Sequence record: MF498774.1
Direction: 5' to 3' (one strand)
DNA length: 64,000 nucleotides
Positions 18,025-59,125 of the stretch are shown in pieces. Made by a program: the position numbers and the translations under genes. Positions within the stretch are counted from its first letter, which is position 1. The number at the start of each line of letters is the position of its first letter. The notes below the pieces were generated by a model. That model was given only the letters and a program-made list of their open reading frames with translations. It did not search any database and was not told where the DNA came from.

Positions 18025-18323
18025 AATACCCAAACATTTATTTTTCGAAGTACTGCACAGGGTCTTATTGGCGAAAAGGGGTTGGTGGTCGAGATGCAGA
18101 AGCACTCCCACGAAACAAACCACTTGAGTTCCTTAACGAACAGTGTGGTTTGGTAAATGTAGGTGTTCGATATTTTGTATGTACTTGTTGTGGTACTGCA
18201 CAAGACGAAGACCAACTTGTTGGTAATGTGTTTGCTGGGAAATATTGCAAAACCTGCTATGACAAAGAGCCACAAATTCGCAAATCTATTGCTGAAAGCA
18301 AAAAACCCGGTTTTTACGACTAA
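18000..18323 (+). CDS. Putative Zn-binding protein
   Basis: CTCC...CKTC pairs; AAGGA SD. Confidence 0.7.
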   Translation: MCNEELQVKYPNIYFSKYCTGSYWRKGVGGRDAEALPRNKPLEFLNEQCGLVNVGVRYFVCTCCGTAQDEDQLVGNVFAGKYCKTCYDKEPQIRKSIAESKKPGFYD

Positions 18324-19349: not shown

Positions 19350-19387
19350 AAAAAGGCTTGCCAATGGGTGAGCCTTTTTGATATCTT
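19350..19387 (+). promoter_or_regulatory. Terminator hairpin overlapping an early promoter
   Basis: AAAAAGGCT...AGCCTTTTT encloses TTGCCA; -10 TATCTT follows at 18-nt spacing. Confidence 0.55.
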
Positions 19388-19423
19388 ATCCATATCGAAA
19401 CAAGAGACAAAAAGGAACGAACC

Positions 19424-20059
19424 ATGAACAACGAAAAATTCAATGAAATTATGGAAAACGTAGTTGGTATGGTTGAAGCCGGTTTTGTTTCTAAGGCCGG
19501 TCAGAAACGCGCCCTGAACGAATGCGCAAAAATGATGGAACTGGTGCGGGCCGAATTCTCTTCTTTCTATCTGGACTCCATCAACATCGAACAGCGTAAT
19601 ATGAATCTTCCGGAACACGAAGCAGCGGTAGACCTTTATTATGCACAACCAAACACCGCGACTTTCGCCAAATATCTGGTAAAAGCAGAAAAAGCAATGC
19701 CTTGGATGGATAAAGCTCTGTGTGAAGAATTGGTTTCTATGGGTGAACAGGTTGTTGCTATGATTGCAACAGTTAAAAACGCTCCCATCAACCAACCAGA
19801 ACCGAAAGTTAGCGAGAAGGAAGCCGTTATCAAGAAAAACATCATGGAGATCATGGAACTTCGGGGTGAACAGTTCAACCGGTGTCTTCGTTTGGATGAG
19901 ATGTTTGGTCGGATGATGGTAACCGCTAACGTTCACCTTGTTCGTGGACACAAAGGTACTGTGTTTGTTCGCGCCTTCTACTACGTTTGTGGACACCTGA
20001 CTCCCCTGAATGTCATCATTGCTGCTATGGAAGAAGCAGCAAAAAAAGAAACAAAATAA
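19424..20059 (+). CDS. Hypothetical early protein (211 aa)
   Basis: AAGGA SD; C-terminal VTANVHLV...FVRAFYYVCGHLTPLNVIIAA looks like a recurrent phage family. Confidence 0.8.
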   Translation: MNNEKFNEIMENVVGMVEAGFVSKAGQKRALNECAKMMELVRAEFSSFYLDSINIEQRNMNLPEHEAAVDLYYAQPNTATFAKYLVKAEKAMPWMDKALCEELVSMGEQVVAMIATVKNAPINQPEPKVSEKEAVIKKNIMEIMELRGEQFNRCLRLDEMFGRMMVTANVHLVRGHKGTVFVRAFYYVCGHLTPLNVIIAAMEEAAKKETK

Positions 20060-20080
20060 CTTTAAATTGAGGAATGAAAA

Positions 20081-20800
20081 ATGAAAAAGCGGTTTGTTAG
20101 TTTTGCTATCTTAGGTGCTATGTGTGCTATTAGTGTGGTACAGGTTAATGCGGCATCTTTTGACTGTGAGAAAGCATCGAGTAAAATAGAGCGAACTATT
20201 TGTGCAGACGAACGGCTGAGTGAATCAGATGAGAAACTGAATTCTGTTTATAAAGAAGTTCGAAAAATTAACCCAGCGATCATCGAAGGTCAGCGAGATT
20301 GGGTCAAACGTCGTAATAAAGCATCTTCAATCGAAGAACTTGACCAACTCCATGAAACACGGATCCAAGAACTTGAATCCATGCTTAAACCAATCATCGA
20401 ACAAGATGATGAAAGTGTATTCACCCGTTCTGAACAACCAAAAATCAAGAAAGTGTCTGTTGTTGAAAATAAAAACGTAGTGAAAGACATTAAATATTAT
20501 GTCGATGAAGTACAACGCACTGGTGGAATGACTAATAAGGATGGATTCTTTTCTGCAAAAGTAGTGGGAAAGGGTTATCCTAGTTGGTTAAAAGATTGTG
20601 GGATGGTTGTAGGAGAAGCACACGATACAAAATATTTCATTAATGACGCCAATAAATATGGTCAATTTGATATCTATATTCAGAACGAATTGAGCTTTAA
20701 AAATGTTGCTGCGAACATGATGATCAAATATATGGTGGATTCCGTAAAAGGTGATTTGGGTCTTGTTAAAATCATGTGTGATTCCGGAGAATTGTATTAA
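20081..20800 (+). CDS. Secreted LprI/DUF1311-like (lysozyme-inhibitor family) protein
   Basis: Signal peptide MKKRFVSFAILGAMCAISVVQVNA, then ASFDCEKAS..IERTIC...LS..DEKLNSVY...QRDWVKRRN. Confidence 0.75.
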   Translation: MKKRFVSFAILGAMCAISVVQVNAASFDCEKASSKIERTICADERLSESDEKLNSVYKEVRKINPAIIEGQRDWVKRRNKASSIEELDQLHETRIQELESMLKPIIEQDDESVFTRSEQPKIKKVSVVENKNVVKDIKYYVDEVQRTGGMTNKDGFFSAKVVGKGYPSWLKDCGMVVGEAHDTKYFINDANKYGQFDIYIQNELSFKNVAANMMIKYMVDSVKGDLGLVKIMCDSGELY

Positions 20801-21066
20801 TGAACCAAAAAGCTCGTGAATTGATGATAGAGCTATTCAATAGCGGGATCGAGTGTAAGTTGGTATCTTCATCCACAAGCTCTTATATCGACGTACAGGG
20901 GCATATGGTGAGGGTTTCAGACCATGGGGGTCACTCCAAATTCAAAGGAACTCAGATCAGGAAAGACCATGGCTATAAAAAGACCAAATATGGTATGATC
21001 TTTGGGTATAACGAGATTGGGATGGCAGTAAAATATCTCAAATCCCTAAATACATTAACAAACTAA
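20800..21066 (+). CDS. Hypothetical protein (88 aa, RVSDH motif)
   Basis: TAATG-coupled to the upstream gene. Confidence 0.7.
   Translation: MNQKARELMIELFNSGIECKLVSSSTSSYIDVQGHMVRVSDHGGHSKFKGTQIRKDHGYKKTKYGMIFGYNEIGMAVKYLKSLNTLTN
21046..21052 (+). promoter_or_regulatory. Late promoter for inh
   Basis: CCCTAAATA 26 nt before the ATG. Confidence 0.7.
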
Positions 21067-21078
21067 GAGGAATGCGAA

Positions 21079-21876
21079 ATGGCATTGAATTATGTAGAAG
21101 AACCAGTAGAAAAAGAAAATAAACCAAAAAAGTCTACTGCGAAAAAACAAAAAGAACTTGACCTCGGGGTAATCAACGAAATTGTTGATGCTAATACCGC
21201 ACCAGAAGCGAAAGCGAAAATTCAAGCATATGCTAAGGAATGTGGTTTTAAAATTAGCAAGTCTAATACTTCGGTTGACGATATGATCGTTAAACTCCTT
21301 GAAATGGCGGACGCCAAAGAGAATGAAAAACTGGACCTTGCACCGGAACCGAAAGAAAAAACCCCTTTTGTCGAACCAGTTGTAGTCGATGACGAATTCG
21401 ACAATGTAGATGAGGTTATTGAACTTGGTGTGGTTGAATCAATCAAAATTGATGATGGGGTGGTTAATATCAATACTCCCAACGATGTTAAAATTGAATT
21501 CACTCCACCGAAACAACCAGAATATATTGATTCTTCTGGGTTTAAAACTCTTGACGAATTAATTGAAGATGAAAAGAAGTTCGTTAAAGAAAAAATGAAT
21601 TTGGAAACTACTAAAGATACCCAAGAACCGGATTTGACTTATGGTTTCAAGCCGAAAGTAAATCTGATTGGGGCTGTTGGTAACCAATACCTCAATTGCC
21701 CGTATTGGATTCTTGATTGGATCCTTGAGAAAGGACCGTCTTGGAAGAGTATTATTGATACTCATGAACGCGAACCGGATAAAGCACTTCTGAAAACAGT
21801 TCTTTATTACATCCAGATTAATGGTAGTGTGACATTGCGCGAGAGTCGTAATTCTCGTTTCCATACCATTTACTAA
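21079..21876 (+). CDS. inh: Inhibitor of prohead protease gp21
   Basis: EAKAKIQAYAKECGFKI, GFKPKVNLIG, PYWILDWI and LYYIQINGSVTLRESRNSRF match T4 Inh. Confidence 0.9.
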   Translation: MALNYVEEPVEKENKPKKSTAKKQKELDLGVINEIVDANTAPEAKAKIQAYAKECGFKISKSNTSVDDMIVKLLEMADAKENEKLDLAPEPKEKTPFVEPVVVDDEFDNVDEVIELGVVESIKIDDGVVNINTPNDVKIEFTPPKQPEYIDSSGFKTLDELIEDEKKFVKEKMNLETTKDTQEPDLTYGFKPKVNLIGAVGNQYLNCPYWILDWILEKGPSWKSIIDTHEREPDKALLKTVLYYIQINGSVTLRESRNSRFHTIY

Positions 21877-21881
21877 TATCT

Positions 21882-21906
21882 AGCCATCCTACGGGGTGGC
21901 TTTTTT
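21882..21906 (+). terminator. Terminator after inh (same sequence as 1649..1674)
   Basis: AGCCATCC-TACG-GGGTGGC-TTTTTT. Confidence 0.85.
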
Positions 21907-24709: not shown

Positions 24710-24763
24710 TATTTAGGGCTCATTCATTGGTTGACTGTATGAACTCTATCTAGTATTATTTAG
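24710..24763 (-). promoter_or_regulatory. Two tandem late promoters for gene 24
   Basis: TATTTAG at 24710-16 and 24757-63. Confidence 0.65.
24731..24759 (+). promoter_or_regulatory. Sigma70-type promoter facing antisense to gene 23
   Basis: TTGACT-17 nt-TATTAT; same hexamers and a similar spacer to the early promoter at 17132. Confidence 0.55.
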
Positions 24764-57286: not shown

Positions 57287-59125
57287 TTAGTTAATACTAA
57301 CAGTAGAACCACTAATCTCGGTCGTACCTTGAGAGGTAATAAGAGATTGAGCAGCTTGCGATTTATAGTCACCAGATACAGTAACTGTATAATCACCAAA
57401 AACATTAAGGTTCATATCACCCTCTACGTTCTCGTTGCAATTACCTTGAACTGTTGCAGTTAAATTCCCTTCTATATCACTAACAACACTACCACCGACA
57501 GATAGGGTCACATCAGCGTCTATACGCGATTCTAAGCCACCGTTAACAGTTTGCTTAACGTTCCCCTTCACCGACTGTTCAACGTTACCATAAACCGATT
57601 CAGATACGTTTCCTTTGACAACCTGAGTCAAGTTTCCATCAACTTGCTGGGTACAGTTACCCATAACGTATACAGTCGCGTTACCTTCAACAACTACCTG
57701 ATAATCACCCTTTACGTTGATCATCCTGTTTGCCATATCGATAACATAGTCATCACCCATAACTTTGTTTACTTGACGACCACCACCAGAAATCTCAATA
57801 TACGTCCCTGATGTATGTTTCAGGTTATATCGTTCTTTCCCCGGAGTATCATCAAATTCCTGAATATGACCACTCTCCGATTCATATACATGGTTATATG
57901 GGTATTCAGCAGCATATGCGCTAGGTGGTTCTTCGAAAAGAAGACCATCAGTACGAGGTGGTGGTGGAACGGACGGATCATCTGGGTCTACTTCGTCAGC
58001 AAAAACAACCGGAGAGGACAATGCCATAATAGAACGCTTCATTCTCCCAGATATTGGGATAATAGGCGGTTCCTCTGGTTTTGGTTTTACTCCATAAGAC
58101 TCTAGGTTTCCGGTTAAAATAATCTTGGCAACCCGATTCGCTCGACCCGGAGTTTGTCTAGCCCAAAGAGAGTCGAGCATACCATTATATGCATCTCGCC
58201 AACGTTCTTCATACATAGCGTTTAGTGTATTTTTGAATTTCGCTAATCCGCCAGCCCCCATCTGAAACGCCATATTTTCTAAAGCCATTTGACGACTTCT
58301 ATTTTCTTTGACGTAGACACGACGTATATTTTCGAATCTCATCATATCAGCACGAGTCTTTTGGATATCCTCGTTAAACAGCTTTGTAACGTCTTCTGGG
58401 GAGATCACACCCCCTTGTACAGGATGACCCAACTGTTGGGTTAGAATAGCATCTATACGGGCTACGTTTCGTGTATTCTCATGTATGATTAGATGACCAA
58501 TACCTATGGTTGGATATCCAAGAGAATCGAGATACCATTTGTTCCTAACCCCTTCGTCCCCCTTCAACATTTTTTCAATTGTGAAATCTGGATCGTCATC
58601 TGCGATTGCATCGTCAAATGATTTGTCATCAGGGGCTAATGCACCAGAAGTATTTTCATCCTGAGTATAAACCGATAACGGCTTCCCATCAATAGAAACT
58701 GGTGCCGTTCCATGGATACTAGCTCCTTTTTGTCCACCACCGGCTAATATATTAACGTCGTTACCAATATATCGAGGGTATTGACCTGTTGGGTCACAGA
58801 ATCCCCGTAGAGTATTTGGTTTTTGGACATAAGATCCGGGGATAGAAAAAAGTATTAAACCATCCTGTTTAAATTCATCCTTGAAAACCCCCATCACCCA
58901 CACACCCTCTACTAGGTTTGTTGGGCTATTTCCTACACCAGATATAGAGGCTGAATCCGTTGACGTGGCACAGCGCATCCAAAGAAGTTCGTCAGTGGGT
59001 ATACCTATTAAATCATCTTTTGATTTTTGATCTGTGTGGTATCCCATCACACGAACTCTATATCTCCCTTGATTAAGAGGATCAAACCGATCCTCTACAA
59101 CTCCAAAAAAGAATTCAAATTTCAT
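57287..59125 (-). CDS. gp5: Baseplate hub needle / tail lysozyme gp5
   Basis: FFGVVEDRFDPLNQGRYRVRV OB-fold, lysozyme DEG..YLDSLGYPTIGIGHL, YPYNH..ESESGHIQEFDDTPG and V.GN beta-helix repeats. Confidence 0.97.
   Translation of the reverse strand: MKFEFFFGVVEDRFDPLNQGRYRVRVMGYHTDQKSKDDLIGIPTDELLWMRCATSTDSASISGVGNSPTNLVEGVWVMGVFKDEFKQDGLILFSIPGSYVQKPNTLRGFCDPTGQYPRYIGNDVNILAGGGQKGASIHGTAPVSIDGKPLSVYTQDENTSGALAPDDKSFDDAIADDDPDFTIEKMLKGDEGVRNKWYLDSLGYPTIGIGHLIIHENTRNVARIDAILTQQLGHPVQGGVISPEDVTKLFNEDIQKTRADMMRFENIRRVYVKENRSRQMALENMAFQMGAGGLAKFKNTLNAMYEERWRDAYNGMLDSLWARQTPGRANRVAKIILTGNLESYGVKPKPEEPPIIPISGRMKRSIMALSSPVVFADEVDPDDPSVPPPPRTDGLLFEEPPSAYAAEYPYNHVYESESGHIQEFDDTPGKERYNLKHTSGTYIEISGGGRQVNKVMGDDYVIDMANRMINVKGDYQVVVEGNATVYVMGNCTQQVDGNLTQVVKGNVSESVYGNVEQSVKGNVKQTVNGGLESRIDADVTLSVGGSVVSDIEGNLTATVQGNCNENVEGDMNLNVFGDYTVTVSGDYKSQAAQSLITSQGTTEISGSTVSIN

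Follow-up and report, generated by a model that had tools for sequence, protein, structure and literature searches.

Why should a T4-like phage encode a protein with an export signal and a domain named after a lysozyme inhibitor? The question is raised by an open reading frame (ORF) at 20081..20800 (+) of a 64,000-nucleotide (nt) stretch of DNA, here called the window, which is 100% identical to positions 1-64000 of the record of Aeromonas phage AS-yj (MF498774.1), a T4-like phage of ~230 kb (Straboviridae, Emmerichvirinae, Ceceduovirus). The 239-amino-acid (aa) product, which we refer to as the LprI-like protein, is annotated in the record as hypothetical protein ATI17658.1. A preliminary description, made from the DNA letters alone, had read it as a candidate lysozyme inhibitor. 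We find that it belongs to a new two-domain family, composed of an LprI-type N-terminal module (N-module) and a C-terminal domain (C-domain), that has been found so far in phage contexts only; this refers to the carriers that could be placed, the C-domain not having been sought in bacterial genomes or in IMG/VR. We tentatively favour a role for the protein in shielding the infected cell from cell-wall-cleaving enzymes.

A two-domain protein with a predicted export signal

The ORF is preceded by a GAGGA ribosome-binding site (20069..20073, +; read from the sequence) that lies 7 nt before the ATG. The mean dN/dS across six Ceceduovirus orthologs is 0.09, which indicates purifying selection, and the ORF is therefore a real gene under selection. 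Positive selection was ruled out, with dN/dS well under 1 in every segment. The gene is present in a single copy in the AS-yj genome, in which no paralogs were found.

The product has the anatomy that the preliminary description had set out, namely a Sec-type signal peptide, an LprI N-module lacking the second cysteine pair, a linker and a C-domain of about 100 aa (~105 aa, helical). The signal peptide comprises residues 1-24 (20081..20152, +), with a signal peptidase I site predicted after V-N-A from the charge and hydropathy profile, and with its boundary to the mature protein at 20153. By inspection, the leader begins with an MKKR n-region, in which three residues are basic, and continues with a hydrophobic core of 16 residues and a V-N-A cleavage motif followed by A. 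A hydrophobic N-terminal leader followed by A-A-S-F-D-C is kept in the relatives. The LprI-like protein contains neither a lipobox nor a membrane anchor, and a lipoprotein identity was ruled out by the absence of the lipobox together with the lack of conservation of Cys15.

Residues 25-111 (20153..20413, +) form a module of the LprI/DUF1311 type, as recognised by a match to PF07007 and by four helices in the AlphaFold2 (AF2) model (residues 35-42, 44-63, 67-78 and 84-111; pLDDT 93-97). The Pfam match (E 7.4e-07; 30.0 bits against a gathering cutoff of 22) bears out the earlier family assignment. It places aa 29-82 on profile positions 1-72 of 106, and a local N-module hidden Markov model gives an alignment that reaches aa 107, beyond this limit. 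The relatives from 65.2, LAh10, RB49 and F48 also pass the PF07007 cutoff. An exhaustive HMMER search of 1.84 billion representatives returned 3552 relatives at E<=1e-3, nearly all of which cover aa ~10-105 only. The first cysteine pair of the module, C29 and C41 (C-x11-C), is invariant in alignments of 9, 66 and 17 sequences. The second conserved pair (C-x4-C, ~40 residues later) is absent from the AS-yj protein; among 149 representative relatives, both pairs are present in 97 and the first pair only in 44. The protein thus resembles PF07007 proteins in the leading F-D-C ... C (C-x11-C), the conserved downstream Q..W and R, the helical fold and the export signal, but differs from typical members in matching only profile positions 1-72 of 106, in the replacement of the second cysteine pair and in its fusion to a phage-specific C-domain.

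A charged, flexible linker (aa 112-135; 20414..20485, +; AF2 pLDDT about 50), which differs in length and sequence among relatives, connects the N-module to the C-domain (aa 136-239 plus the stop codon; 20486..20800, +). In the full-length AF2 model the C-domain is a separate unit of helices and one short beta-hairpin (pLDDT 90-95), and modelled by itself it reaches a pLDDT of 92.8 and a pTM of 0.85. It has no match in Pfam, NCBIfam or PADLOC, its profile (A6) matches no PDB sequence, and a Foldseek search of the PDB gave a best E of 5.5 with TM below 0.3. The C-domain is a confidently modelled domain without a known structural relative in the PDB. A Foldseek search of the PDB with the whole model returned nothing under E 0.69, a result confounded by the flexible two-domain arrangement; the sole low-rmsd local match was to 6ar7, an uncharacterised Burkholderia protein (probability 0.54).

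The C-domain carries a signature of invariant C173, N212 and C233, with a D-G-x-x-S motif upstream (alignments A6 and A7). The invariance of C29/C41 and C173/C233, together with the export signal, fits an oxidising periplasm, where both pairs would form disulfides. Among the six Ceceduovirus orthologs, the C-domain holds 16 of the 21 residues that vary, and this concentration, as expected of a specificity-bearing part, suggests that the C-domain may play that role.

Other searches added little. NCBIfam gave sub-threshold matches only for the LprI-like protein, and the PADLOC defence models gave no meaningful match. PDB sequence searches were likewise without meaningful match for the LprI-like protein, for the family profile A3 and for two canonical LprI proteins. 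Word-indexed protein searches with the whole protein or the C-domain region recovered near-identical phage proteins only.

The family in T4-like phages, jumbo phages and a phage-plasmid

The protein has a full-length match to the PHROG family phrog_4675 (E 6.2e-82 over aa 7-232), which itself has no assigned function. Our analysis adds the domain dissection, the Cys/Asn signature and a link to the Klebsiella, SSU5 and AS4 proteins. This link comes from profile-profile comparison, which relates the C-domain to Klebsiella phage F48 gp108, Salmonella phage-plasmid SSU5_101, Aeromonas phage AS4 and others. The comparison of Aeromonas-type with Klebsiella/SSU5/AS4 C-domains by hhalign (probability 97%, E 8e-11) rules out an Aeromonas-specific C-domain, and a local profile search recovered the C-domain in further representatives.

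The carriers are Aeromonas and Klebsiella T4-like phages, Aeromonas jumbo phages and Salmonella SSU5. The gene order rnlB-orf-LprI-like gene-orf-inh seen in AS-yj recurs in the Ishiguroviruses 65 and 65.2 and in one metagenomic contig. In Klebsiella Marfavirus-type genomes the two-domain gene is instead downstream of the primase gene, a placement shared by an unidentified T4-like contig. A two-domain gene is also present in LAh10, a non-T4 jumbo phage, and the related D3 and D6 have similar tblastn matches. In SSU5, a temperate phage-plasmid, the gene sits among accessory genes, and in three metagenomic contigs it occurs with dense one-strand arrays of small unannotated ORFs. The LprI-like gene is a functional, stand-alone accessory gene whose position varies between phages and which has no constant partner.

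Two further genomic settings were observed. The Ishigurovirus Aswh_1 has a second two-domain paralog (L018:3046-3648) between the baseplate genes gp9 and gp8; its annotated start lies 45 nt downstream of the start of the tblastn match, so that the leader was apparently omitted. In a metagenomic T4-like contig (L010:192-929), the two-domain gene adjoins gp8 and gp7.

Bacterial proteins of Klebsiella, Citrobacter and Raoultella have the same N-module subtype without the C-domain. A host-derived origin of the LprI-like protein is unproven: the N-module subtype is common to enterobacterial proteins, and the C-domain is known from phage contexts only. RB49 ORF260c has only the N-module in common with the AS-yj protein, and its C-terminal region is different and Cys-flanked. 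A close relative in Aeromonas phage AsSzw2 (P0005) is recorded as a shorter 142-aa product, and in phage 65 (NC_015251.1) two annotated ORFs lie under the match where 65.2 has one. Each of these two cases may reflect a single event, either a broken copy or a sequencing error.

Precedents among LprI/DUF1311 proteins

Membership of the 'LprI family' alone does not imply lysozyme inhibition, a label that is inherited from the family name. The name is a weak guide because the family is named after Mycobacterium tuberculosis LprI, in which a separate, additional MliC domain is reported to be sufficient for lysozyme resistance (PMC7933661). The AS-yj protein resembles M. tuberculosis LprI in its DUF1311-type module and predicted envelope location, but LprI is a lipoprotein with an MliC domain, whereas the AS-yj protein has neither lipobox nor MliC: no Pfam match to MliC was obtained at E<=1, and the model is mainly helical.

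A different precedent is Salmonella ScwA, an LprI-domain protein that is soluble and periplasmic, for whose stability disulfides matter and which controls the levels of MltD (PMC7933661). By analogy, the AS-yj protein could be a regulator of host peptidoglycan-remodelling enzymes that binds or stabilises lytic transglycosylases or endopeptidases and so tunes wall integrity, for example against premature lysis. ScwA demonstrates that a soluble, periplasmic, disulfide-containing LprI-domain protein can control such an enzyme and show no lysozyme phenotype (PMC7933661), and AS-yj encodes a possible partner in a protein with an SLT domain (24.4 bits). However, ScwA is a protein of 275 aa with a canonical C-terminal LprI domain and four conserved cysteines, it is not phage-borne, and no sequence relation to it was seen beyond the module. 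The SLT gene, moreover, is unlinked to the LprI-like gene, at a distance of about 166 kb. We consider a ScwA-like role quite unlikely.

A third line of precedent connects DUF1311 proteins with type VI secretion systems (T6SS). Etsi4, a DUF1311 protein of E. coli, relieves the toxicity that a T6SS effector, called cell-wall-targeting by its authors, exerts in the periplasm (PMC12981562). In Pantoea, Salmonella and WHIX loci, genes for LprI-domain proteins with signal peptides adjoin genes for lysozyme-like or transglycosylase-type T6SS effectors (PMC9796082, PMC8867033, PMC12135965). The association thus has experimental support for Etsi4 and rests on gene context elsewhere, and the AS-yj protein shares with Etsi4 and the predicted Pantoea and Salmonella immunity proteins a predicted signal peptide for the periplasm. 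It could accordingly be imagined as an orphan immunity protein, carried by the phage, that counters the T6SS cell-wall effectors of Aeromonas or enterobacteria in the neighbourhood and so shields the infected cell, or an SSU5 lysogen, from being killed before phage release. The N-module subtype shared with Klebsiella, Citrobacter and Raoultella chromosomal proteins, and the family member in a temperate phage-plasmid, would suit such a role. Unlike the immunity proteins, however, the AS-yj protein has no effector neighbour and possesses an extra C-domain (Salmonella Dublin SED_RS06230, for comparison, has 146 aa); none of the bacterial relatives compared revealed the C-domain in a T6SS locus, there is no effector context in any phage locus examined, and the benefit in a short lytic cycle is uncertain. 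An immunity function as the main role of the protein therefore seems to us highly improbable.

Fusion partners of the N-module

The domains to which the N-module is fused provide a further indication of function. In 148 relatives scanned, the partners include SH3, Ank, Sel1, TPR, PDZ and others. One relative, P0039 (326 aa; L021:1559-2539), combines the N-module with a superinfection immunity domain of the T4 Imm type (47.6 bits; cutoff 27.9), and is encoded on a contig of small, mostly unannotated ORFs. Another relative has an N-module fused to the domain of an Ltp exclusion lipoprotein. The Imm and Ltp fusions suggest a direction towards phage exclusion functions.

These fusions raise the possibility that the AS-yj protein is an envelope-directed exclusion or remodelling factor, similar to Imm, Ltp or Llp, that does not act on lysozyme. 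The N-module would then be a generic periplasmic scaffold or oligomerisation unit, and the C-domain would bind a host receptor, the injection route or membrane machinery. Partners as many and as unrelated as SH3, Ank, Sel1, TPR, PDZ, Imm_superinfect and Ltp are what one would expect of a carrier module; of the two domains, the C-domain evolves faster and is seen in phage contexts only; and the family coexists with Spackle in some phages and lies among accessory genes in SSU5. However, the AS-yj protein showed no resemblance to Imm, Ltp, Llp or Cor and also has no membrane anchor or lipobox, and the only DUF1311 protein with experimental evidence of action in trans neutralises a T6SS effector that acts in the periplasm and is described as cell-wall-targeting. 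An exclusion factor of this kind is a serious candidate, albeit a rather doubtful one.

Spackle and the gp5 lysozyme

T4 Spackle is a mature 75-aa helical bundle with one disulfide that binds the basic patch around the cleft of the gp5 lysozyme (PMC7677548). The LprI-like protein is like Spackle in being phage-encoded, in having a signal peptide and small helical domains, and in occurring in a phage with a gp5 lysozyme; the one disulfide of Spackle also has a counterpart in the one conserved cysteine pair of the C-domain. Unlike Spackle, the mature AS-yj protein has two domains and ~215 aa, and no relation in sequence or fold was found, in agreement with the preliminary description, which had held the two to be unrelated. 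The Spackle profile PF25676 did not match the LprI-like protein (the positive control, Klebsiella F48 Spackle, scored 99.5 bits), and Foldseek searches of the PDB with the whole model and the C-domain model returned no Spackle entry. More generally, no signal of MliC, Spackle, Ivy or PliG was detected in the LprI-like protein by sequence or fold.

We then considered whether AS-yj has a Spackle of its own. None was detected genome-wide (phmmer over all 1248 ORFs, best E 1.5), and a tblastn search with Spackle gave 738 matches that include few or no Aeromonas phage records. In the primase-helicase interval, where T4 keeps sp, AS-yj has a single 149-aa ORF (record positions 202433-202882, -; L016:38433-38882). 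This ORF was ruled out as Spackle, having no Pfam match.

The gp5 lysozyme domain (aa 190-316 of the ORF at 57287..59125; 58178..58558, -) is recognised by PF00959 (31.3 bits) between Gp5_OB and Gp5_C. It matches T4 gp5 structures at E 7.8e-51 in a PDB sequence set that includes the gp5 lysozyme entries 6xc0/6xc1, and the catalytic D-E-G and Asp are aligned, indicating that the domain is intact. The preliminary description was thus right about the integrity of the T4-type domain, with the correction that gp5 lies on the minus strand. The gp5 lysozyme is a candidate target of the LprI-like protein, and the combination of a missing Spackle with an intact gp5 may leave room in AS-yj for a Spackle analogue.

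AS-yj also encodes a protein with an SLT lytic-transglycosylase domain (record positions 185989-186516, -; L016:21989-22516). The gene lies among minus-strand genes, mostly of unknown function, and is a third muralytic candidate besides the endolysin (record positions 80764-81264) and gp5.

A proposed protective role in the periplasm

The most likely reading of these results, although we hold it tentatively, is that the LprI-like protein binds and neutralises an incoming enzyme, one that cleaves the cell wall and gains access to the periplasm from the exterior of the cell. The phage would make the protein during infection, from a transcription unit without a late-type promoter motif. Sec export and cleavage of the signal peptide would yield a periplasmic, disulfide-stabilised protein in which a flexible linker joins the four-helix N-module to the phage-specific helical C-domain. 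Its target could be, for instance, the tail lysozyme that a superinfecting phage brings along, or an effector of the muramidase type delivered by a bacterium nearby, and the infected cell would stay intact until the phage's own lysis. We infer the periplasmic location, both disulfides, the timing of expression and the whole step of binding and inhibition. The support for the protective reading comes from family context and from analogy; the family name itself contributes none.

Several observations weigh against this reading. Lysozyme inhibition by the LprI domain itself is stated to lack experimental backing, and the LprI-domain protein ScwA gave no lysozyme phenotype (PMC7933661). MliC (PF09864) is present in none of the 148 scanned relatives (alignments A3 and A5). 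The N-module covers 72 of the 106 profile positions and is without the second disulfide, its usual partners are generic interaction modules, and it may be a scaffold rather than an inhibitor. Neither domain matches a known hydrolase inhibitor structurally in Foldseek searches of the PDB, and the two-domain family has no experimentally studied member. No effector or hydrolase gene adjoins the AS-yj gene, whose neighbours are orf211, orf88, rnlB and inh, and none was found in the eleven relative loci examined either.

The distribution of the family also argues against its most direct version. Two-domain family members coexist with true Spackle in Klebsiella T4-like phages: Marfavirus-type genomes contain a genuine Spackle (PF25676; L005:1158-1439 and L009:2330-2611) with the two-domain member ~2 kb downstream. 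The family is also present in SSU5 and LAh10, where a T4-type gp5 was neither looked for nor shown. The protein is thus not a simple replacement for Spackle, because it coexists with Spackle and occurs where no T4-type gp5 is evident.

Taken together, the lysozyme-inhibitor interpretation of the preliminary description is partly supported. The Etsi4 precedent, the T6SS gene contexts and the failure to detect Spackle in AS-yj speak for it, and the absence of MliC and the lack of a lysozyme phenotype for ScwA speak against it. A more far-reaching form of the protective reading is that the two-domain proteins of the T4-like, jumbo and phage-plasmid lineages make up a previously unrecognised class of inhibitors, encoded by phages and acting on cell-wall hydrolases in the periplasm, with the C-domain supplying specificity. 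They would serve in superinfection exclusion at the tail-lysozyme step in Spackle-less Aeromonas T4-like phages, or in immunity against T6SS wall-degrading effectors. At this breadth we think the proposal unlikely to hold.

Genomic neighbourhood and transcription signals

The LprI-like gene is part of a co-directional block that begins after rnlB and ends with inh. After rnlB there is a terminator-type hairpin with a T-run (19350..19379, +), identified by a terminator scan (RNA fold -19.4 kcal/mol, z -5.4). The hairpin is GC-rich, and it is likely to be an intrinsic terminator, forming the upstream boundary of the transcription unit, because its stem is kept despite sequence changes in phage 65.2 and the metagenomic contig L008. 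The preliminary description had placed an early promoter at 19358 that drives the operon. This assignment does not hold up: the sigma-70-like match (19358..19387, +) is weak, with 9 of 12 consensus positions, it lies within the conserved hairpin, and its -35 part is not conserved in relatives. Such matches occur at the frequency found in shuffled sequence (16 promoter-like sites in the region against 15.7 expected).

The hairpin is followed by orf211 (19424..20059, +; phrog_8776, E 2.3e-95), which has the same position in 65.2, AS-sw and L008 and is separated from the LprI-like gene by a gap of 21 nt. The ~30 nt before the orf211 start (19392-19423) are nearly invariant among AS-yj, AS-sw, 65.2 and L008, with diverged flanks, and may be a regulatory or leader element. 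On the other side, the start of orf88 (20800..21066, +; phrog_17661) shares 1 nt with the stop codon of the LprI-like gene. Neither orf211 nor orf88 has a Pfam match or a signal peptide, and both flank the LprI-like gene in Ceceduo- and Ishiguroviruses. The block ends with the gene for the prohead protease inhibitor, inh (21079..21876, +; phrog_1051, E 1.2e-56), which is annotated in the record; beyond inh, the terminator scan identified a terminator-like hairpin with a T-run (21882..21901, +), which closes the block. In the AS-sw record (NC_048674.1, 'partial genome') the rnlB-inh block occurs twice (L026; near 121-124 kb), with N in the rnlB-orf211 spacer. The doubling probably reflects an assembly problem rather than a true duplication.

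The timing of expression was approached through late-type promoter motifs. CTAAATA occurs 30 times in the window against 14.3 expected, about a twofold excess, and no shuffle reaches 30; examples are at 18320, 21046, 21913 and 22992 (+) and at 24710, 24757, 26575 and 27534 (-). The motif is found upstream of gp23, gp24, the scaffold gene, inh (21046..21052, +; 27 nt upstream of the gene) and rnlB (18320). It appears to be a candidate late-promoter core in the phage group of AS-yj, replacing the T4 motif TATAAATA. A TATAAATA late promoter for the LprI-like gene was ruled out, as the motif is absent upstream. CTAAATA is likewise absent upstream of orf211 and the LprI-like gene. The LprI-like gene is probably not late-only, because CTAAATA precedes inh and rnlB but neither of these two genes, and the missing late-type motif lends indirect support to early expression.

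Implications for phage envelope biology

To our knowledge, few phage periplasmic proteins made during infection have been described, and most of these are uncharacterised. The textbook cases, Spackle, Imm and RI, were all defined in T4. The present family also illustrates an annotation hazard: UniRef and Pfam apply the name 'lysozyme inhibitor LprI' to thousands of proteins, although the activity maps to the other domain of the founding member. Beyond the name, the family includes a confidently modelled domain without a known structural relative, and as a conserved two-domain family with a predicted export signal in unrelated phage lineages, it is a good candidate for a second solution to the protection of the envelope.

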